Below, piece by piece: positions 15,798 through 63,285 of a stretch of 64,000 nucleotides of DNA (position 1 is the stretch's first letter; every line of letters starts with the position of its first letter). The notes under the pieces are model-generated. The model was not told the DNA's origin. It made no database searches and was given only the letters and a program-made list of their open reading frames with translations. This stretch comes from Saccostrea cucullata (taxonomy: Eukaryota), in the NCBI RefSeq assembly GCF_032062105.1, contig NW_026930642.1, forward strand, positions 310,001 to 374,000. The letters are read 5' to 3'. Position numbers and translations under genes: made by a program.

Positions 15798-18700
15798 TTA
15801 AAGTAATGCAGCCGCATCATTCATTCTACAATCTCGTAGAGCTTGCGCCAGAACTGACGATGTGGCCTGACTTCCTTCGCGGTTCTTCCAGGACTTTAAC
15901 ATAGCGTACACCTGAAAATAAATTGAAACAATCAATACTCAATGAATTCAAATGTTTAAAAAGTTTAAATTCAAAATGTGGACAAGTTTTAAATTCTGAG
16001 TAAGTTGAGAAAAATAATAAATGATGGATGCATTAATACTAGTATCCTTGATGATAAAAGAGAGAATATTGCTAATCACATGGAATAAAATTTATCCTAA
16101 GATAGACTTATTTGAACCACATGGCTTTAAAACAAGAGTTTTAAGACTAGCTGTTAGCAGGAAAGGTTTCCACCTCAGGCTTGTAACTGGTACATACAAT
16201 AACAAAATGAGCTGTTTCCAACCAAAAGCATAATTATATGTTTCATAAATTTTTAATAAGCTAAATATTACTAAAGGCAAACTCATACATGTATATGCAA
16301 CATCAGTATCATGACTTTTCTCTACTATAAATACTTCCTAAAATGGTACATATAAATAAAACAAGAGATGTTTGTAAAACACTTATGGCCCCCCTCCCCC
16401 CAATTGGAATTTTTCTAAGTCCAAAAGGGCATAACTCTGTCAAACATGTGCGATCGTACCCAAAACAGAACCTGATCTAGATATTCATCTGATAAATCTG
16501 TATACTAAATTTCATTTCAGTATGTGCAACCTCTGCAAAGAAAATGAACAGAAACTGCAAATAAATGGAATTTTTCTAAGTCCAAGGGGCATAATTCTGT
16601 CAAAAATGGTGCGATTGTACCCAAAACAAAACCTGACCTAGACATTCATCTGATAAATCTGTATACTAAATTTCATTTCAGTATGTGCAATGGTTGTGAA
16701 GAAAATGAACAGAAACTAAGTTGATTGACAGACCAACCGATAAACAGCAGCAAAGCAATAAGCCCTCCCTTCTTCGAAGGGGGGCATAATAAAAACATGG
16801 GTAACAAGATGTCTGAGCCAATGCTCACCTATTATACCCCCGCTCTGATGTGAATTCTTAAGTTCAGTTATGGTCAGACACAGGGATAAAAGGGAAGTTG
16901 ACATCGGATTCACACAAGAATGAATCCTCCCATAAGGCATATACGTAAACAAATATTATGCTAAAATTTCAAGCATCTGCAATAAGAAGTTGCAGAGAAA
17001 ACTGTGACAAAAATTTGTTACTGACAGCTAGACAGACAGATGGACGAACGGACATGAGCTGACACGAAGAAACACAAGGGTATATATATAACAATATACC
17101 CTCCTCTCCTTCGGAGCAGGGGTATAATTAAACTGATTACATTAACCCCTTACTTTAATGAAATTTCAATGGAGCATTATTTAGAGTCAATTGTCGCACA
17201 TGAAACAAATGTTCTAGTAGTGTACACCTCTCTAAATACAACATTTATGCAAGTTTGGTCTTTGAATTTCAGTTACTCAGGAATCGAGTTATTCCAAAAC
17301 CTATCTATTTTTTATAATCATTCGGAACCTGCAAGATTTTATGCTAGTAAGTTGGCTAGTGTACATTCATCCTTAGATACATCATCTTTGCAATTTTGGT
17401 CAGCAAAGGGATTTTCTAGTGACCTGGGAATAATCTGAAGAAAATCTGGTATTTTCATTCCTGCAACACTCATCTGAAAAAGTTTGTTGGATTCAGACTA
17501 TCATCAGCAACAGTCAACAGTCTGGCAGAATGCATCTCTAAATGCATCATCTATGCAAGTTAGCTTAAAACAGGGCTTATAGGTTCATTAGATTGCACTG
17601 GTCAATTATTTGAAAAGGAATTGTGGTCCAAAAAACTTGAGATGGTGGACAAAAGAAAGAGAAAAACCAGGCACCAGAGTCCAACTGAATTATCGTGCCC
17701 TGATTCACTAAAAAGGCTGACCATTTTATATTCATTTGAAACAAGAAATTAAGGTACTTTGCAAAGAATAGTGTTTAATGAACATAATAAATACTTGAAG
17801 ATTCCTGGCAGAACCTAACTGTTTTGGAGTGCATGGTGCATGCATGTGTATACATTTTATAACCCAGATTCTCACCAGTCTAGCCTAATGCTTCTAAATA
17901 ATTTAAGTTTATTTAATAGATGCATAAGAAGGAAAGAACCAAGATATATAAAAGATAAATAGTCTGAGTTCTGCTAGATCTAACAACTAAACACATATCT
18001 TAACCTTGTCACTTTGATTCTGAAAAAAAAAACACAACACTTTGTTTTATGTAACACAAACAGAATTTGAGGAACTGCATGCAGTTCTGTAATGATGCAC
18101 ACTGAAGTGGTAGGAATATTATTGTATTTTTCTAATATTCACTTTTACATACAAACACACTTCATTTCTTTTACTAATTAATAATGTAGCACCTGCCAAT
18201 CACTTAAAAATATTCATTAATAGTCTGATCAGTACCTTTAGTATTTTAATTTAGTATGTGTTTAAAACAAAAATTTTTGTTTAAAAATTAAAAAACAAAT
18301 TTCTTAGTATTGATTATTTTTTTAATTCCTTCCTAGTAGCTTTAATATTTAATAATAAGCTCTAATGTTTAACCAGTGCACCATTTAGGTGTACATGCTT
18401 GCAAGCCAGCCAAAATAGATAACCCCATACTAACTAGAAAAAGGTGACTTAGATGTTGATACTTTATTGTTAACCATATTGTAAATCAAGTAGGTATTAT
18501 AGCACCTCTTTATCTTTAACCAGTGATAAATATTAAGCCATTGTATTTGTTTTTGATGCTCTGCATTCAGAATGGGCAGAGAAAAAAATAATATTAATAA
18601 ATCTTTCTCTCCAATACATGTAATATGTTAATATATTATTAAGACATTAGTGGCCACAGATAAATTAAAAACCAATTATCACTGATATTAAATTCTCATT

Positions 18701-21700
18701 GACCTTTTCACTTGGATCCTAAAAATTGATATACATGAAGCATTCATTTTATTTTATCATATTTATATATCCAAGCAATGTTACACTCACTCTTGCTATT
18801 TTCATAATTATAATGAGTCATAATTTTGAGTTTTAATAAAAATAGTTGGCTTTATAAAATATTTCTAAGTTTAATTTTTTATAATTTTTTTTTATTATTT
18901 GCATTTGATCTCACCTGCTGGCGTTGGTCATTACTCCTGGATTGGAACTCTTCAATGTCTTCAAATTCAAAGTCCAGTTTGTTGGCTAATCTGACCCAGT
19001 CCTTGTTGTGGATCTTCACTGCTATTTTCTGAAGCACCTTGTCATCTGGAATGGGGCCTCCCATATTACTCCTGGGGGCGGGGGTGGGGCCTGTACTGTT
19101 GAACTATTGTAAATGAAAAAAATAATGAAAACCATCATTCTGTCCTATGAATAAAACTACTATACAATTGTCTCGATTTCTTACTCACCCCCACCCCCAC
19201 CCAACTTTCCATTCAGCAAATGGGGTGGGGAAGGAAACAATCTCTTAAAATCATACTGTCAAATAATCTGAAATCCTTTGATTGAAGAACACATCCATGT
19301 TAAATCATGTACATATGTACTCTTTTTTATGACCCATGATAAAGCTAGAATCGATTCACTTGGTTTTAAAGAATAATTAAATGCAATCAATAAGTGAAAT
19401 TTAATTAATCCTTATTTTTTAATTCATGGCATATTAACTCAATACTTATAGGAGTTTGTCATGGTGACCTCTTAAAACTACAAGCAAGGTACAAGTTACT
19501 TATGGATAAAAATTTAATTGCTTCAATTTTTTATTTATATTTCCCCAAGTCGATAATGACAAGTTCAAATAAAAAAAATTGTAAAGAGGTCACATTACTA
19601 GTTCTTGTCTGCAGTTCTTAACAAAGTATACAAATTATAAAACTTCTGTGAAACAAGTTCACATTCATAATCATTAAGTACACTTTCTAGTAAATATATA
19701 TCATTTGGTTGATCCAGTGTGTACATGTTTATGGGCACTAAATATTATAACAAATTTATATAAACATTTGTACAGTCAAATGTGCATTGCCACTGCATTC
19801 TTTGGAAAAAAAGTTTAAAATAAAGTGCAAAAAGGCAAAATATTGTCTATGTTGTGTGCATTGAATAAAAATGTTTTGTGCAGATCCTAGTATAAACAAC
19901 TTTGTCAAATAAATTTTATTTGAAATCTTACAAAAATTATTTTTAAGTAGGATTTAAAAAGGAATATAAGTTTTACTGACCAAATGGAAAAGCATTAAAA
20001 AATAGAAAGAAAAAAGTGTAACATTCAAAAGACATGTAGAAGTAATATATGCTTTTAAGGAATATATTTATATGTTTACTTGACTATTTCAACAAGCTGA
20101 AAGTCGTATTTGTTGAAGATTTAAATGCCTAATTTTTTCATGTAATTAAATTCCATTTATAAAATGTTGTGATATGTAAATGCATGAAGCAAGTGACTAA
20201 TGTAAATTCAATGTGTACTATTATAATACCATTCTATTCTGAGTTTGTCTGCCAGATTGCATCTGTAAAATTAAAGTTATATTGTACAGTTCTTGAGAAA
20301 TCCCTGTTGTGGAATCCACCAGTTTTAACCTTATAACAAATACTGTTATATTTACCAGTATTTATAGATAATTAGAAGTCTGACATTTAGATATTTGTAT
20401 AAACCCGGGTCATGCTGATCAAGTTTGTATTCTGTTGACATTAAACCACTATCTTGATACATCTATTGCACCTGACTTGAATCTCCTGTCAAATGACCTC
20501 ATTTTTACATTTCAGGTAAGAAAACAGGTACTAGTAAAAACAAAAAAAAAACAAAAAAAACAAGAGGCCCATGGTCCACATTGCTTACCTGAGTAACATG
20601 GCCCTTTCATCTTCATCAGCACAATTTTTTTTTTTACACAAAACTTTGATCACATACATGTATATAATTATGGCATAACCTTACTACCAGGGGTTAAATT
20701 TGAATAAAACTGAATCTTACACTATTTGCAGATGCTTCCATGTAAATATGATCAATCAAAGTTTCACTGTTCCTGACTAATAAAAGACATCAACTAATTA
20801 TATTCCTTTGAAAAACTTTCATCTCCCACAACCAAGAGTACGTCATGATTTGAACAAATTTTAATCTACACTACCCAGGATGATTCCATATAAATATAAT
20901 TGATCATAGCTTTGCTATACTTGAAAGGATTTTTTTGAAATCCTTTTGTATATTTTTGATCCCCCATTGTGGCCCAAAACTACTCCTGGGGGGTCAGGAA
21001 TTGATGAACACTAAACTTACACTACCTGATTGAGGATTCCTTTGTATAAGTACATGTATTTCTAATTATAGCTTTGCTGTTCTTGAGATAAAGGTTTTAA
21101 AGATTTTCCCTAAATATGTATTCCTAATTATTTAACTTCAATCCTATGTTGTGATTACCCTATCCCTTAGGGATCATAATTTGAACAAATTCAAATATAG
21201 AGATGTTATGGATCTTTTGTATGTCATATCTTTTCTGAACCAGTGGTTCTTCTTGAGAAGAACTTTTTAAAAAGATGTCACCAAATTTTATCGAATTAAT
21301 CTTTCCTTGAAAAAGGGTAATAATTATGGCTTTTCTTGTGAACAAATCTTAAATCCTCTTTATCCAAGGAGGCTTCTTGGCAAAATTGGTTGATATTGAC
21401 CAAATGGTTTTGTAGAAGAAGTCGAGAGTGTGAAAAGTTTACAGACAACACATGACACATGATAGCTGATGACAGACAGACAAACGTCAGACGCTTTTTG
21501 ATCAGAATAGCTTGCTTAAGCCTACAACTCAGGTAAGCTATAATATTGTGCTGACTCTTCAAAGATAATTTGATTTTTTTTCTTACCTCTGGAAGTTTGC
21601 TGTGAAGTTCTTGTCTCATTTGTGAGGGCAAAAGTTCAAAGTTCAAGGCCTCTTCCAGAAGAGGTTGTGGAATTTTTAGACAGCCTCTAACAAAATTCTC

Positions 21701-24653
21701 CTCATTTATTGTCCCTGACAAGATAAAATGAAATATGGAGATAAAAATAAAAATTTACTATAATCAAGCTCAGAGATCCACAAAACAAGGAAGAGTAAGC
21801 AGCCCCTTTCAACTGGTAACACTCACCATACACTCCTTCACATTTCAGTTCATGATAATATTAATATTTATGTTCCATTAATAATTAATTTAAATTTATA
21901 TATGATAAGCAAAGATTAAATTCAAAGCTGTATGATATGAATGCTACCTTTGTTCCCTGGGTCCATGAATTGGTAGAGTGTATTAACAACTCGATCTATA
22001 TTCTGTCAAAAAGTTAAATTAATTAATCACAGGAAACTAAAACAAAATAAAAAGGGCCAATAACAAACTACTATTGAGGATATTCAAAATAAAGTTAATG
22101 CATTAATTTGGTGTTCATACTAAGAAGAAAGTATATGGTAGGAAGTTATATATATTTAGCAAGATGTACTATCCCAAACTTCGTAAAAATTCTTTTAAAA
22201 ACCTTGATATATGTACTAGACATTTCTTGATTTTGCCCATGATTCCACTCTCTGTAGTCTTACCCCTTTATCCTCTGGCTGGACATACACTCTCTCTATA
22301 ATCTTTCTAAAAATGTCCTTTGGTAAATTATTCCCATTGTTTAACATCCGGAAAACACCTAGAATGAAGAATAATATATTGTAATGCATTTAAATATCTT
22401 TGATTGTCAAATATTTCCATATTATGTTTTTTTTTTCTATCAACAAAAATACCACAGGTAAAAAGTAAAAATACTTCAACTGCTTGTAATCTGAAGTTCT
22501 CTTATGCTATTAAGATTTCAAACCCATGCTGTGTGATGCACCTTTAAGCTTGTCTTCTGTGGTGGAAGTCTCACACCATTTTAATCCTCTGAGGAAATTT
22601 TCAAATGAAATTGTCTTTGTCCTGGGATTTACAAACTTTTTCATTATCTGAAATTGCAATTACATGTACATGAAATTAGTACTTGAACAAAAACTTGTGA
22701 AAATTAGAGACAATATTAAATATGTACGTACTATAATGAACTTATTGGAATCATCAAATACATTTGCATGAAATATGTCTATATGTTATGAAAAAAAATG
22801 AACAGTGTTTTAGGTGTTTGAGGAATAACATACATTTAAACATGTGTTGACATTATAAATTTGCATAATGCCATGTTTCCATGTGATATTGTCTTTCCAT
22901 GCTAAAAAAGCAAATAAAACAACCAAAAGTATCTTGAAAGAAAGAAGTCACCAATGTTTAATATGTATAACTTATTTATCTTCACTAGGATTGTTTGCAT
23001 ATTATTTTGCATTAGATCTCTTACATTTCTTGAGAAGGCATCTTGATTGATTGTATGTTGAGCTAAAGCTTCTTCAGTGAGTTCTCCTTTATCTGTACAT
23101 CCCAGCTGTTTAAATCGTAGCCAAAGTCTCTCCACCTCTGCAATACTCACTAACATATCAATAATAACATCTTAGCAATAATCATCAGTATAAAAACAGA
23201 TACAAAACATAAATACAAAACAAGTTGTTAAAAAGATTCATTGATAATTCTAGGGCCAATTAATACATATTTAGGAAAATAAAAATGTTAAAGATGGAAT
23301 TTCATGCATATGTCTGATTAAATTTATGATACTGATCAATGTTTGTAAGGGGAAAAATTGCCTTCATCATTTCAATGACATTAAAAGATACACATTATTT
23401 AATTTCAAATGGGGCAATTAACTTTGAAAAATTCCTCAATTTTAATACTTTTCAATATTTTAAAATTTCTTTCTTCTGGGTATCAACCATCCTAGCAATG
23501 CCGGGGTCCTGAGTCAACACGTTGCCGCTAGACCCCTGGCATATTTCATCCAATATCTGTGGGCTGACTGTAGCAACATCTTTCAGAAAAATTGCAAAAC
23601 TTGATTGTTTTTCTTATCTCTAAACCAATCACATTAAGCCATTCTATTATAAACAACTTGTAAAATGTGCATTGGAGGTGTCAGCTGAATCCTTATCAGA
23701 CTATTTTTGAAAGCTCTATATAATTTGATTGGTGCTTCTCAATGAGAGAAGCAAGCCCACAGATATTGAATGAAATATACCAGAGGTCTAACAGCAACAT
23801 GTTGACTCAGGACCCTTGGCTTGCGAAGATGGGTATCAACCATCCTTGCAAATTATGCCAGCTAGGGGTCTGGAGTCAACACATTGCTGCTGGATCCCTG
23901 GCAAATTTCAGTTGATATTTTAGGTCTTGCTTCTGTCACTGAGAAGCACCAATCAAAATTAAAGCTTTCAAAAATAGTTCAATAATGTTAAAAGAAAGGA
24001 TTCACTTGAAACCTCAAATACACATTGTTTATCGTAAAATGGCTTAATGTGATTGCTTGAGTTAGAGATAAGAAAAACAATCAAGATTTGTAATTTTTCT
24101 ATAAGATGTCACTCCAATCACAATCTAATTAAAATTAGATGTTAGATCCACTTGCATACTCGCTACACTAACATCTAACAACATTCCATAGAGGGTCACG
24201 ACAGAGGTCAAATTCGGAACAACTCTAGACATATTCCTTCACTAATATTCAATGTTTTTGCAGGCGACGATTTGATTGGTTGATAGACTTTGACCTCTGA
24301 CGTGACCCTCTATAAGATGTTGTTAGATGTTAGTGTAGCGAGTACACGAGCGGATCTAACATCTAATTTTAATTAGATTGCTACAATCAGCTCACATAAA
24401 ATTGAATGAACCTCCAGGGGTCCAATGTTAATGTGTTGACTCAGGGCCTCTGGTATTATGAGGATGGGTATCAACTTTTTATGTACAAATATGTGATAAA
24501 TTGATTTACACAGTGAAAATCAACTAGCATATTATTTGACGCACATTCAGAGGCAACAGCGTGGATAGTTATCCAGTTTGGTTTCTTGGGATCGGTGTGA
24601 CGGGTACATGCCTTAGACTCTGGAACCAGGATCTGACTAGTGAAGGCACCCAT
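15798..24653 (-). CDS. Uncharacterised N-myristoylated calcineurin-B/CHP-like EF-hand protein fused to a C-terminal death domain (~317 aa)
   Basis: Minus-strand exons 24653-24545, 23149-23025, 22647-22542, 22358-22264, 22002-21948, 21714-21587, 20262-20230 (33-nt microexon, less certain), 19103-18915, 15911-15798; GT-AG with consistent phases, 954 nt. N-terminus MGAFTS (MGxxxS). CNB/CHP-like helices: LSIAEVERLWLRFKQLGCTDKGELT, ISFENFLRGL, EDKLKGVFRML, DPGNKGTINEENF. Death domain: VLQKIAVKIHNKDWVRLANKLDFEFEDIEEF...VYAMLKSWKNREGSQATSSVLAQALRDCRMNDAAALL*. Confidence 0.88.
16359..16790 (-). mobile_element. HINE/Helitron-type non-autonomous element with a ~160-bp internal tandem duplication
   Basis: aacaagagatg terminus; duplicated ggaatttttctaagtccaa...aaatgaacagaaact unit; terminal hairpin gccctcccttcttcgaaggggggcata. 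Confidence 0.65.
16803..17128 (-). mobile_element. Second HINE-type element
   Basis: aacaag...tgagccaatgctca hairpin end; (gaca/gacg)n microsatellite; terminal hairpin ctcctctccttcggagcaggggtata. Same architecture as 45568-45869 and 57009-57340. Confidence 0.6.
20559..21541 (-). mobile_element. Helentron/HINE element with Cg170-like units, decayed
   Basis: aacaagaggcccatggtccacattgcttacctgag at the left end, catgatttgaacaaa units, and ctcaggtaagcta at the right end. Confidence 0.75.
23488..24466. mobile_element. Two oppositely oriented copies of one MITE (23488-23831 and 23841-24466) sharing a triplicated target site
   Basis: GGTATCAAC occurs at 23479, 23832 and 24467. Each copy has catc...gatg ends with long TIRs, and the interior of copy 2 is the reverse complement of copy 1. 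Confidence 0.8.
24121..24380. mobile_element. Mutator-like MITE nested in the second copy
   Basis: Near-perfect ~90-bp TIRs (caatctaattaaaattagatgttagatcc...); 9-bp TSD ctccaatca/ctacaatca with one mismatch. Confidence 0.85.
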
Positions 24654-24849
24654 ATTTACTGCATAAGAGGAAATAATAATACAGCCATTCAAAAGAAAAT
24701 TGCACATAAGTATATACATATAGATCAAAAGAAATATATAAATTAAAATAAATTATCATTATCATACAAAAGCTGTTTGATCACGATCTTGCAAATACAC
24801 TTGTAAACAGACCTAATTAAAAGTTTTTCAGCCTTTTTTTTGTTTACAT

Positions 24850-25380
24850 GTTGATACGGCAAACCGGAAATGAAAAGAATAAACTAAAACACTGTTTGAC
24901 GACAAATATTCCGGAAAAATATTTCTTTGGAAAATGCAATACGGAAGTTCCGGTTCTTAGTTCAAGGGACTAACTTGTTACACAGTTTGACCTTTGTAAG
25001 TACTAATATAACATTTTTTACACATTCCATGAATTAGAAATCAATTAACAATCATTATAGCCAATTTTTCCATGAACATTTTACATCAAATCTGCTTTGC
25101 AGCTTCAAATCGATGACGAAAAGTGCGAACGTGACAGAAACGTATGAGAATATGGCGTATTTTGTCAGTGTTTGCAAATGTCATGTTTAATAAACCGATT
25201 TCAACAAAATTTATCTGCCTTAAAATGTGATAAATGTGTTGTTGTAAGTGTTTTTTACAATGACTATCGTTATCCTTCTTCTATTTTTTTAATGAAATGT
25301 GCAATCTTTGTTTCCCTCAACAAAAAAATGATAATATTTACGACACGTGACTGAGAAACACATGTCGGTCATGGTCATGA
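24850..25380. promoter_or_regulatory. Candidate bidirectional promoter shared by the EF-hand/death-domain gene and NCOA4
   Basis: The divergent start codons are 1.24 kb apart. ETS-type CCGGAA/CGGAAG motifs cluster at about 24864, 24909 and 24942-24954, and an E-box GACACGTGAC lies at about 25342. Confidence 0.55.
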
Positions 25381-25896
25381 TCTTGATCAATTGACAGACT
25401 ACTTCAAGTTGAAAGGCGTTTGCATTTTATTATTATTTTGTTAAATTCAAGTATTTTCTGTGTAAGAGGTTTATTTACTGCTCTGTTATATAAATGAACT
25501 ACTTGTACTTTAGTAAATAGAATGCATTTAGGCAAGACGTAATTATTTTGCCAATTTTATTGTTCCCAGGGACAGGTATATTTCTAGTTAGGTCAGTGTT
25601 GTTACATCATGTGATAGATTAGTATGATTTTAGATCAAGGCTACTAATCTTTAATCCATTGACACAAAAAGTTCTGATGGAGATACATTCTTGTGACCTG
25701 TACCTGTTCTAAATATTAGGCCTAGATAAGATTTGTACCTTTCATCTGTTTGTGTCCCAATACACAACTGCGTAGTTTATGGTGCAGTATATGAAACAGA
25801 CACATAGGTTTTCCTGCTCTTCAAAACAAGTTCTTTAGAGGTGCACAGATTTTGAATAATTTTTTTTTGTTTTTGTTCCTAAAGTGATACTGTGAA

Positions 25897-51707: not shown

Positions 51708-53999
51708 ATGGTTCAGAGGAAACAAACGCAACCGATCATTCCCCAGAGGAAACCAATACGCCCTATTGAGCGCCAGAAAATGCGGCCATGGTTGGTCAAT
51801 CTTCTGAATAATGAGAACATCGAGGGATTTTCTTGGGAGTCTCAGGAGCGCGAGACATTCCGGATCTCCTGGAGACACGCTGCCAGACAAGGGTGGGATC
51901 CCGAGGTGGATGCCGGGCTGTTCGAACTATGGGCCAAACATACGGGTACATTGACACATGTTCTTTTTACTTTATTGATTCCACTGTTTGACGACCGCAA
52001 TAGTTAATGATTCATCGCTTCAAACAAATGAAAGACATACTGCACAACGCAACACACACTCTGACTGCATGAGTATAAGGTTTCAACTTCGTGCAACTTA
52101 GTCTAGAGTCCTTTAAAGATCGCGGCGACTCAATAGTTTGTCAAAATATGAAACAAGTACAATGTACTTGAAATTTTCTTTCCGTGCTTGATATAGCGTC
52201 ATAAACTAGGTTATATTTTAAAATTAATGTAGGAAAATACGTGGTGGGTGATGAACCCGATCCCAAAAGGTGGAAGGCTAACTTCAGGTGTGCCTTAAAC
52301 AGCCTCCCCGACGTCAAACAGCTCAAAGATCAAGGCCAAAGGAAGGGCAAGGACGCATATAAAGTTTACCAGTTCCTCAACGAGAAAAAAGCCGTCCACA
52401 AACACAAATCTGCAGGTACAAAACACCCCCACCCCCACCCCCTAAAAAACCTCACAATGACCTAAAGTAATTTTCATTGAATACCAATGTTGTCGGTCCT
52501 TTTCCAGATTGTTTTACCTCGATCTGTTTGTAATTTTGTCAATTGTTATTTCAGAGCGAACCTCTGTACCAAAAATAACCCAGACCAAAACGAAGAGGAG
52601 TCTGCGAGCTCGCAATACCAAGAGAATCTCTTACAGGAAGATGGTAGAGATGGACAGCGAAGGCGAAGAGGAGGAGTCTTCCTCAGACTTCATCATGTCG
52701 GAATCCGACAGCTCAGCTTCTGTGGGGGTCAGTGTAATAATGTCTACTTAAGGAGGAGCGAGAATTCTCATCTTTTTAAAACTAGCTTAGTTGAGTAGTA
52801 TCCATAGGACTATAACAAATCTTTCCCTTTGTTTAGAATGACACCCCAGAGCGAATGGACGACATCTCATCAGACAACGAGCCAGTATTTGAGGAAAGCT
52901 TAGAAACACGCCTCCCAGATTTCAATAAAATCTGTAAATCCACAGGTATGTTTACTTTGATTTTGATATATGAAAAATGAATCGCATAATCAATAGCAAT
53001 AGCATATCTCAGTGAATAGATGTCTTGCCAAATAAAATGAACATTAATAAATATATTGGTCTTTTCTGACAGTGATGATCATGTTACTATTTTTAGATCT
53101 CACATCCCTCCAGCTGCCCCCGGAGAAGGACCTCCGAGGTCACGTGCCTTGCCCTTACCCCAGTACCAACACTCTTTTCCAGTCCCTCTCCCAGGTATCC
53201 CCCTCCATCGGGGGAACTAGAGATGATGGTAAGTTATTTTTTCATTAAAGGTATTTCAGTCTTTATATTAAAGAATGGTGTAGCAATTATTTTAAATTCA
53301 GTGCAATAAGGTTAAATATTTTGCATTCATGCTAAATGGACAAGTAAATACTGAGTAAAAAGCCTTAAAGGTAGTTTTATTAAAAGATTAAAGCAAAGCA
53401 TGTGTTGTAAAAGTGCTTGAAGAGGGTTTAAATTTTTAATTTTTTTTCACGGTTTACAGAGTCCGCCTCGACCACAAGCAGCACATTAACTGACGAAGAA
53501 CTGATACAGCTGGTTATGGAAGCCGAGGTCCAAACACCGGAAACGGAATACCCCGATTTGTGGGGCAGTGGACTTCCGGTGCCACAGGAGGTCGCTTACG
53601 TTGATGCCATAATTGGTAAGGACCAATATATTTATTAACAAAATAACATTTCTAGTAAATTGAAATGCTGTTTGTTACTTTAACTTTCAAACTAATTTTA
53701 ATTACACTGTTATTTTTTTCTCTCTAGAAGAGGGTGATACGACCTACTTAATTTTGGACAATGTGGAAAATGAAGTTGTGATCACAGATACCCCCGCAGT
53801 ACGCTGTGAACAGATCACAAATGGAGAGGTCATGGTAAGGGTGAAATCTGGCATTCAGTAATAAAAAACACAAACATTTACCGATAACACACGTAATACT
53901 TAGATAAACATGATAAAGGGACAATGGAGGGTAATTTAAATTATAGTCCTCTTTATTTTGTAGCAGTACACTGGATTGACTGATCTCTCACAGCTATGA
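51708..53999 (+). CDS. Interferon regulatory factor, IRF1/IRF2 type (IRF-A), 8 coding exons, ~377 aa
   Basis: Exons 51708-51945, 52233-52415, 52555-52727, 52837-52945, 53097-53228, 53460-53615, 53728-53834, 53964-53999; 1134 nt. DNA-binding domain RQKMRPWL...W...FRISWRHAARQGW...LFELWAKHTGKY...[19 protein letters not shown]. A basic NLS-like segment and an acidic tail follow; no IAD1/SMAD-like domain is visible. Confidence 0.93.
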
Positions 54000-60980: not shown

Positions 60981-63285
60981 ATGGGATTTGACAAAAATAA
61001 ACGGACAGATGAAAAAATGACGAAAAAGCGGCCGATTGAGCGGCAGAAAATGCGGCCATGGCTGCAGGACATGTTGGAAAATGGTGGCGTCCAAGGGCTG
61101 GAATGGTTTGATAAACCTAAAGATCAGTTTAAAATCAACTGGAAGCATGGGTCTAGACACGGCTTCAACACCAGAAAAGACGCCAGTCTCTTTGAGAAAT
61201 ACGCCCAACACACAGGTCAGTAATAAATTGATTCTACATGTCCAGTCTTAGTCAAGTAGGGCCTAGTACTTCCTTCTCCACCTCCTACCCTCCAAATATC
61301 ACATGATTCAGCCTTTTAGAATTTTTTTTATTAAACTAGGATTTTTTTTCATGGACAACTTTAATTTTGAATTGTGAATAGGCCGAACTTTCGTCTATTT
61401 AATCATCAAAATTTAATGCACACCTCTATAAATTTTCATTTATTGATAATGCATTCAAGTGCGTGAATTTACGTCAACATAGAGAACCCAATTTACTTAT
61501 ATTCGGTCATTTATTTCTTACTTTGTATATTTCTATATCCTATATCTTTGTATATTTATGTCTTTGATTTTGTTGTTCGAATAATGAAACACAAATCTGA
61601 AATATTTTAGCACATTTTAACAAAAGAGTTTAAATTAATTTTAATTAATTTACATTTTTAAAGATGGAAATATTTTGCACATAAGTTTTCTGCGTTTTTT
61701 CAAGTTTTTTTTTTCCAGTCTGACATCATAAAAAATGCTGTTTTCGTTCATGTTGATGACCTGAATTACATATGATTCAGAAAAAAACACCTCAGAATTA
61801 AATTAACATCTTAGTTTAAACTTTATTTCATTTAAATTAGACATCATATATACACAGTAGATGATACACACAGGATTCGGAAACGAACCGTTTCCTTAAA
61901 TTAACTTTCAACTATTTATAAATAAACATTTGTTTATAACAAAATCTTCATTTATTACATTTATTAAAATAATGTTAAAATGAGGATAAAAAATGTTGAA
62001 TACCAATACAAAATTTTAAAAATTTACACGTGAAAACTCTACAATAATTTGAAAAATCATTTTTATTGATTCTTTTTTTTTTTTTTTTTTAATTTATTAA
62101 AATATTTAATTATCTTTTTTTGTACGATTCAACAGTATCAAAATTGAAGAATTAAAATTTTTTTAAATTATAACGATTTTTTATAATATTTAAGATAAAT
62201 ATTTGTTTATTAAAGCCAAATTTGAACATTTTTTTATCATGGCTATTGCCACACCACTGTAACATTTTAAGTTGTAATAATTTTGTTTTAGAAAGATTAA
62301 TTTTTACTCGATCCTGGTATAAAATTTTTATTTCTAATTCCTGACCTTATTTTTGTTTTATTTTCGGAGAATATTTCAACATTCTGCATGTGGTTTATAA
62401 AACAACAAAAAATTACATGAATTTGTTTATATACAAGTATTAATATTATTTACGCGAAACCTTGAAGGCATGTTCTCCGAGCTATTTTAATATATACAAA
62501 TTAAATAAATAAAATTAATTCTTTTTATATTAAAAAAGGATAGTTGTATTTTACCAAACTTTACAAATTCGTGTTAAAAAAAATAATTCTTGAAATTTAT
62601 TTTGCTATGAAAATTATGAAATATAATGTTTCACTATAAATGATAGCTGAATGTTGGAGGACAAAACAGTAACTATTTCGATGTATTTGTTATTTAATAT
62701 CTATGCGCATGCTTGTCGACATGCTTTCCGAGCAGAAGTAAACGTACATTTTTTATTTTATTTTTAATTCTTCGTTTAAAATCTAAACCTGCGAAAATCT
62801 AAGAAAAATCTCAAAAACTGGGAAAATTGACATAATACTCGTTCATTTTCTTAAGAATATATAATATTTTTATTTTTTTTAACCACACTATACAAAACAG
62901 AATTTTTAAAAGAAATCTTCATTTTCTTATTAATTTTATTATAATATAAAAACAATAAAACAATATTTTTCTTTATGTAACAATAAAGAAGTATTCTTTA
63001 TCATTAAAACGGAAAAAAAAAAGTTAAAAAAAGGTTGAAATATTTTGTCTGGCATAATTGATTATTTTAATTATGTACAAAAAAGTACATCAGATCTTTT
63101 GTCTTTTCAAATTAATATTTATAAGTTTCAATTGAATACAAATATAGACAATGTACCATTTCGTTCAGACAACAACAAAAAAAAAATTACTTTGTTTTAC
63201 AACAATAAAATTGCTCGACATTTATGTATTTTGATTTCAGTTTTTCCCCTAGCGTAAAGAAAGAAAAAAAAATGCTTTTTTTCAT

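Follow-up and report, generated by a model that had tools for sequence, protein, structure and literature searches.

Whether a series of small exons on the minus strand of Saccostrea cucullata contig NW_026930642.1 encodes one protein that joins a calcineurin-B-like EF-hand module to a death domain, and what such a protein might do, are the questions raised by the locus described here, which lies in a window of 64 kb (the whole stretch of DNA analysed). The gene runs on the minus strand from an ATG at 24653 to a TAA at 15798-15800, and RNA joins the two domains in one transcript. What is new is a family that combines a calcium-blind calcineurin-B-like module with a death domain; gene models of it are already present in databases but carry no function. 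The role tentatively preferred here, at slightly less than even chances, is that of a putative myristoylated, calcium-independent docking module that would tether or cap a FADD/RIPK1-class complex at membranes.

Gene structure and transcripts

An earlier sequence-only reading of this DNA proposed nine exons spliced into one protein of approximately 317 amino acids. All nine have AG/GT ends, keep phase throughout and sum to 317 codons. RNA from four studies, as raw reads for one run and contigs for the other three, was compared with positions 18895-24890 and is spliced from exon 1 through exons 2, 3, 4, 5 and 6 to exon 8 exactly at the predicted sites, and the EF-hand exons and death-domain exon 8 lie together on one contig in each of three runs. 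The proposal of a single gene with phase-consistent exons and both domains on one RNA therefore stands, but its main form is shorter than proposed. The predicted path 21587->20262->19103 was not seen in RNA; instead, a direct splice 21587->19103 is present in 15 raw reads that begin at 14 different points. No coverage falls on 20095-20294, and exon 7 (20230..20262) is skipped in all four RNA sets. Because of this direct join and the zero depth, the main product is a protein of 306 amino acids from which exon 7 is left out. Exon 7 is probably real as a minor cassette isoform, given that isoforms of C. virginica and M. gigas hold similar inserts of 12-14 amino acids at this place.

With the exception of exon 7, each exon matches exactly a part of RefSeq XP_062567147 or XP_062567148, the products of a locus (Saccostrea cucullata LOC134229409) that is labelled 'uncharacterized' only. 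Eight of the nine proposed exons are thus present in the RefSeq models, whereas exon 7 is not constitutive, and an upstream exon (25739) and a microexon of 15 nucleotides had been missed. The junction between exons 8 and 9 lies outside the RNA-compared stretch and is backed by the RefSeq models and by full-length transcript-derived proteins. The window was searched exon by exon, and full-length analyses were performed on database proteins. The chance that two neighbouring genes were merged as an artefact is practically negligible; two separate genes are ruled out by the junction reads, by contigs spanning both parts and by the presence of the same fusion and introns across phyla. The features of the gene are as follows:

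25739..26000, minus strand: upstream exon, mostly 5' untranslated region (run X1 contig and RefSeq model; 5' end approximate)
24545..24658, minus strand: exon 1, MGAFTS start and family-specific PxKPNWITxHA segment, amino acids 1-36 (RNA junction to 23149; conservation)
23025..23149, minus strand: exon 2, EF1 with the invariant EVERLWxRF helix, amino acids 37-78 (RNA junctions; hhalign)
22542..22647, minus strand: exon 3, EF2 with a degenerate loop, amino acids 79-113 (RNA junctions; conservation)
22264..22358, minus strand: exon 4, EF3 with a loop shorter than that of calcineurin B, amino acids 114-145 (RNA junctions; alignment)
21948..22002, minus strand: exon 5, helix leading into EF4 and the first half of its loop, amino acids 146-163 (RNA junctions)
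21587..21714, minus strand: exon 6, remainder of EF4 and the C-terminal helices of the EF module, amino acids 164-206 (RNA junctions; model)
20230..20262, minus strand: exon 7, 33-nucleotide linker cassette, probably a minor isoform (absent from four RNA sets; oyster inserts)
18915..19103, minus strand: exon 8, disordered Pro/Gly linker followed by the N-terminal half of the death domain, amino acids 207-269 of the 306-amino-acid form (RNA; Pfam Death 2-45; predicted local distance difference test score, pLDDT, <50 at 207-221)
18005..18019, minus strand: optional 15-nucleotide microexon (NQSDK) within the death domain (AG/GT ends; present in three database proteins)
15798..15911, minus strand: exon 9, C-terminal half of the death domain, with the stop codon (Pfam Death 47-81, E 5.5e-9; matches RefSeq models)

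Exon 2 aligns with an exon of the oyster's calcineurin B gene with an hhalign probability of 93%, and a 5-amino-acid insert occupies the place of the microexon in Crassostrea/Magallana. At the 5' end, the run X1 contig extends 255 nucleotides beyond 24662, and its loose end matches the upstream exon (25739). In this contig and in RefSeq model X1, exon 1 starts three bases ahead of the AG acceptor (24659-24662), at a site preceded by TG, not AG, in the assembly, and two other contigs begin exactly at 24660, as expected of a branch; either a tandem TG/AG acceptor or a difference between alleles may account for this. RNA deposited under the same species name departs from the assembly at approximately 3% of exon positions (18895-24890), which suggests divergent lineages or high polymorphism, and the codon differences listed comprise 14 synonymous and 4 non-synonymous changes. 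Intron 1 contains nested inverted repeats that resemble miniature inverted-repeat transposable elements (23487-24453; arms up to 101 nucleotides) and are matched by many reads from elsewhere, and a 161-bp tandem repeat lies at 16405-16717.

The EF module, N-terminus and death domain

A full-length AlphaFold model contains two confident domains (pLDDT 81) and a linker, residues 207-221, that is disordered. The linker had been read as Pro/Gln-rich; it is actually Pro/Gly/Ser/Thr-rich and highly variable in length among family members. Modelled alone, the EF module reaches a pLDDT of 84 and a predicted template modelling score of 0.74, and its structural matches, at Z 10-13, are CHP2 (Z 12.8, root-mean-square deviation 3.4, 166 aligned), KChIP2, NCS-1, calcineurin B, CBL2 and CIB2. 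Among PDB entries, the EF profile matches calcineurin B best, with E values of 1e-13 to 7e-15 (1e-13 for the human protein), followed by KChIP (3e-11), CHP1 (8e-10) and NCS-1 (4e-8), while identity to calcineurin B is only approximately 18%. The model and the profile, together with the N-terminal motif considered below, agree with the prediction of a four-EF-hand fold of the calcineurin B (CNB)/CHP type behind an MGAFTS start.

One reading of this kinship, considered improbable, is that the protein is an alternative calcineurin regulatory subunit, whose EF module would bind the B-binding helix of calcineurin A and whose death domain would bring the phosphatase, in active or inhibited form, to death-domain complexes. 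The EF profile is closest to calcineurin B, whose gene has two introns in common with the family, and CHP3 has been reported to interact with calcineurin A (PMC10368425); however, the low identity to calcineurin B, the lost calcium sites and the shortened EF3 count against this reading, as do the presence of an intact, canonical calcineurin B gene in this genome and the equal or better structural fits of CHP2, KChIP2 and NCS-1.

Working calcium-binding EF hands are not supported: none of 76 members fits the PROSITE EF pattern in any loop. The EF1 loop opens with Gly, and EF2 lacks both Asp1 and an acid at position 12; in none of the 76 does EF1 or EF2 combine Asp1 with an acid at 12. The EF3 loop is shortened. 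EF4 keeps Asp1 in 71/76 members and Gly6 in 72/76; position 12 is acidic in 7/76 (Asn in the oyster), and Asp1 and an acid at 12 occur together in 6/76. As judged from the alignment, the canonical calcium ligands of the module have been lost. The protein might instead be a genuine calcium sensor that links a rise in Ca2+ to the assembly of death domains by a calcium-myristoyl switch, acting through EF4 or a non-canonical site. This would fit the retention of Asp1 and Gly6 in EF4 and the NCS/CHP sensor fold, but it is very unlikely given the rarity of an acid at position 12 of EF4 and the broken state of the other three loops.

Several hydrophobic residues are invariant or nearly so (W46, F49, F93, W102, F116 and F189), and the EVERLWxRF set of helix 1 is conserved, as is a bilaterian segment at residues 22-32. 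In CNB/CHP proteins, hydrophobic residues of this kind form the groove that grips a target helix (PMC10368425), and their conservation suggests that the EF module may be a calcium-independent helix clamp. In two models, the N-terminal helix stretches the alignment to the CIB2-TMC1 fusion 8xoq back to approximately residues 3-6, compared with residue 21 for CIB2 alone. The extended part probably covers the fused target peptide, a faint hint that the N-terminal helix may fill the groove.

MG is likely to be the start codon used, given its context (A at -3, G at +4), an in-frame stop two codons ahead of MG in three M. gigas transcripts, and the conservation of Gly2 and Ser6 in 59/64 and 54/64 bilaterian alignment rows, respectively; positions 4 and 8 are aromatic. 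Two in-frame ATGs farther upstream, at 25805 and 25745, have a weak context (C at -3 in both) and are taken by the RefSeq X1 model, which gives a 25-amino-acid N-terminal extension. The myristoylation motif fits 58/59 MG-starting homologues, suggesting that Gly2 is myristoylated in bilaterians. Coral members lack the motif and begin with an MFKFLRR-like, basic-hydrophobic stretch that could also bind membranes.

The death domain is divided between exons 8 and 9, scores 66 bits against a Pfam Death (PF00531) gathering cut-off of 22.6 and is modelled with six helices at Z 12-13 to solved death domains, in keeping with the prediction of a complete domain. The best matches of its profile are RIPK1 (6e-15) and FADD (1e-14), followed by CRADD, ankyrins, THOC1, PIDD and TNFR1. 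A link to the Myddosome had been suggested, but no MyD88 or IRAK death domain, IRAK4 included, was found at E<0.01 in the death-domain profile search, and the structural Z values of MyD88/IRAK (8.8-10.4) lie below those of the FADD/RIPK1 class. The structural list is led by THOC1 (Z 13.2) and ankyrin-G (Z 12.7). The profile order suggests that the death domain is FADD/RIPK1-like, not MyD88/IRAK-like. Arg117 of FADD is needed for death-domain assembly and is the target of NleB. The residue that aligns with it is N247, and this position is Asn in all 62 bilaterian rows that have it and Arg or His in corals. An invariant Asn here is suggestive of a special partner or a one-sided cap.

Distribution, ancestry and neighbourhood

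The lophotrochozoan range expected for this architecture was too narrow, and homologue searches found an older and wider family that extends from corals to amphioxus. Full-length proteins with both modules are present in bivalves, gastropods, a chiton, annelids, Lineus, Macrostomum, two hemichordates, Branchiostoma and stony corals, and members are approximately 300-330 amino acids long with a death domain in nearly all. Compact AT-rich metagenomic loci, probably from rotifers, also encode both modules. A cluster in the ESM Atlas, known from its summary, has 62 members (commonest phylum Chordata, 269 amino acids, 97% with a death domain); its shape resembles the EF part of the model, and its features resemble those of the amphioxus protein (0.94, with the next match at 0.77). 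No arthropod, nematode, mammal or protist homologue was found by a word-based homologue search that is lossy; some members recovered in the second search escaped the third, so that a true absence from vertebrates, echinoderms, sponges or ecdysozoans is not established. As far as the searches and general knowledge go, the family is apparently absent from human, fly and nematode.

Seven introns occupy the same codon and phase in the oyster, Capitella and B. belcheri (7/7), and five EF-module introns are at the same places also in Stylophora. The exon structure has therefore been kept since at least the bilaterian common ancestor, and that of the EF exons since the coral-bilaterian ancestor. Two of the three introns located in the oyster's own calcineurin B gene match in codon and phase, which indicates ancestry, not family membership. 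Given the introns common across phyla and the two common to the calcineurin B gene, the fusion is ancient and appears to be of calcineurin-B/CHP lineage. In its resolved parts the tree agrees with animal phylogeny, and it contains duplications in Crassostrea/Magallana and Solemya. Between the oyster and M. gigas, the ratio of non-synonymous to synonymous substitution rates (dN/dS) is approximately 0.04 in the EF exons; for the last two exons, dN amounts to 0.13 and dS is saturated. The gene is under purifying selection.

Crassostrea/Magallana possess a second, faster-evolving copy (C. virginica LOC111118108 and its M. gigas counterpart), and Solemya also has two copies. Searches of the S. cucullata genome found no EF-bearing paralogue; profile and Pfam searches missed this genome's calcineurin B gene, which was located by a short DNA pattern. 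Canonical calcineurin B lies on contigs C14498 and C21243 as two near-identical copies, probably haplotypes, and NCS-like genes form a cluster on contig C11651 (271000-280999), with one more on C1047. In the Stylophora pistillata assembly, the death-domain exon was not found in the 10 kb that follow the last EF exon, although the complete protein is encoded by a transcript contig, and the gene model PFX17806 has only 235 amino acids. The Lingula model consists of the EF part only, and, among the aberrant models of Lingula, Tegillarca and Babylonia, two are without a death domain and one has an internal duplication; these may be annotation errors or real variants.

NCOA4 (Pfam ARA70; 27913-32198) is arranged head-to-head with the EF-hand–death-domain gene, and two IRF DNA-binding exons lie farther along the window at 51732-51968 and 60981-61220. 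Of the genes named in an earlier description of the neighbourhood as immune- and stress-related, NCOA4 and two IRF genes are thus present, but the adjacent genes differ in Capitella (no Pfam match), amphioxus (an M28 peptidase gene) and the coral Stylophora (dynactin p62 and ELO genes). Because the neighbours are not conserved, they lend no support to an immune role, and the neighbourhood was ruled out as functional evidence. A 168-bp tandem repeat (26419-27000) that resembles an oyster satellite lies between the upstream exon and NCOA4, and long open reading frames at 33835-38222 resemble, by eye, a DDE transposase and a YqaJ-type nuclease. A scan of 11 upstream regions for X-box, NF-kB, ISRE, STAT and Fox motifs found no shared promoter signal.

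The slow, vertical and mostly single-copy evolution of the family bears on a non-immune alternative, in which the protein would be a structural or trafficking adaptor of motile-ciliated epithelia, sperm or the membrane skeleton, with a death domain used as in ankyrin, UNC5 and THOC1. The hosts are animals with ciliated epithelia, with no arthropod or nematode match, and the structural lists, headed by THOC1 and ankyrin-G for the death domain, also contain calaxin, a ciliary doublet EF protein and an axonemal death-fold chain. However, sequence profiles place RIPK1 and FADD above ankyrin and THOC1, no protist homologue was found by the search described above, and an X-box is present upstream of only some of the 11 loci, with no common position. 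This alternative is judged rather unlikely.

Proposed mechanism and relation to known systems

In the preferred reading, that of a calcium-independent docking module at membranes, a calcineurin-B/CHP gene would have undergone duplication earlier than the divergence of cnidarians and bilaterians, given up its calcium ligands and acquired a FADD/RIPK1-class death domain by fusion. The pseudo-EF module would grip an amphipathic helix of a membrane protein without calcium and, together with the lipid, fix the protein at the membrane, while the flexible linker would offer the death domain to a TNFR/FADD/RIPK1(IMD)-type assembly. Speculatively, the death domain would place or cap this assembly rather than nucleate it; placing or capping is likelier than nucleation because the equivalent of FADD Arg117 is an invariant Asn in bilaterians. 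It is also conceivable that the N-terminal helix at rest occupies the module's own groove and is displaced by the target, for which the target-myristoyl switch described in CHP3 serves as a speculative model (PMC10368425). Taken further, the protein could be an ancestral animal adaptor, retained in some chordates, with a target-operated membrane switch, in which binding of the target helix would free the myristoyl group and place a one-sided capping or gating death domain on TNFR/FADD/RIPK1 assemblies, or bring calcineurin there. This fuller scheme is unlikely to hold in its entirety; if true, it would add a regulatory node so far missing from the ancestral pathway of extrinsic death and immunity.

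Several points weigh against the docking role. Structural Z does not separate THOC1, ankyrin-G, CRADD, FADD and RIPK1, and the profile scores of ankyrin, THOC1 and CRADD are close behind those of RIPK1 and FADD, so a class assigned from sequence is weak evidence. NRADD is among other death domains that also lack Arg at the FADD-117 position. The hint of a filled groove concerns residues with pLDDT 50-68 and an inferred numbering offset, and the upstream in-frame ATGs of this genome could yield a non-myristoylated form. A mostly single-copy, slowly evolving gene is also atypical of bivalve immune genes.

Death-domain adaptors form a short, well-catalogued list in model organisms, and to our knowledge a calcineurin-B-like partner module is seen on no characterised member of it. 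The family has been overlooked because its EF module falls mostly below Pfam thresholds and because human, fly and nematode are apparently without it. The literature and its supplements, searched by domain combinations and accessions, yielded no published description and no named family, in agreement with the sequence-only reading that no characterised protein has this combination. Database orthologues include LOC105330847 (M. gigas), Hypp7774 (Branchiostoma) and CAPTEDRAFT_225193 (Capitella), and members are labelled uncharacterized or 'Death domain-containing protein', or are mislabelled ankyrin-3 or THO complex subunit 1-like; the RefSeq name of the M. gigas orthologue, 'neuronal calcium sensor 1', is an automatic label. 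Should the family prove to regulate complexes of the FADD/RIPK1 type, it would be relevant to cell death and immunity in corals, snail vectors and farmed oysters; it also offers a natural test case of a calcineurin-B fold operating without calcium.

Calcineurin B (PPP3R1) and CHP1-3/tescalcin have in common with the oyster protein the four-EF-hand fold, the MG start, the best profile match and, for the oyster's calcineurin B gene, two introns. However, they are stand-alone, Ca2+-binding proteins of 170-210 amino acids, whereas the oyster protein has no ligands, a short EF3 and an N-terminal segment specific to its family, and it carries a death domain at the C-terminus. NCS-1/KChIP/hippocalcin, CIB1-3, plant CBL and calaxin have the same fold (Z 10-12), with N-terminal acylation in many, but score lower than calcineurin B by profile, and none has a death domain; the oyster family is without working EF2-4 sites.

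FADD, RIPK1, TRADD and CRADD resemble the oyster protein in pairing a flexible linker and a second interaction module with a C-terminal death domain, which in the oyster is nearest to that of RIPK1/FADD. In contrast to them, the oyster protein lacks a DED, kinase, RHIM, TRADD-N or CARD by Pfam and, in bilaterians, has Asn at the Arg117 position. Unlike MyD88 and IRAK4, it has no TIR or kinase domain, and, unlike ankyrin and THOC1, whose names some databases give it, it has no ankyrin repeats, ZU5 or THOC1 helical domain, members being proteins of approximately 308 amino acids with the EF module and death domain only. TRAM/TICAM2 and TIRAP are lipid-anchored sorting adaptors that place a signalling assembly on a membrane via TIR domains; here the likeness is a functional analogy only, with no homology found or expected. 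Judged by the defining features of each, the family stands outside the CNB/CHP, NCS, FADD/RIPK1, Myddosome and ankyrin families.
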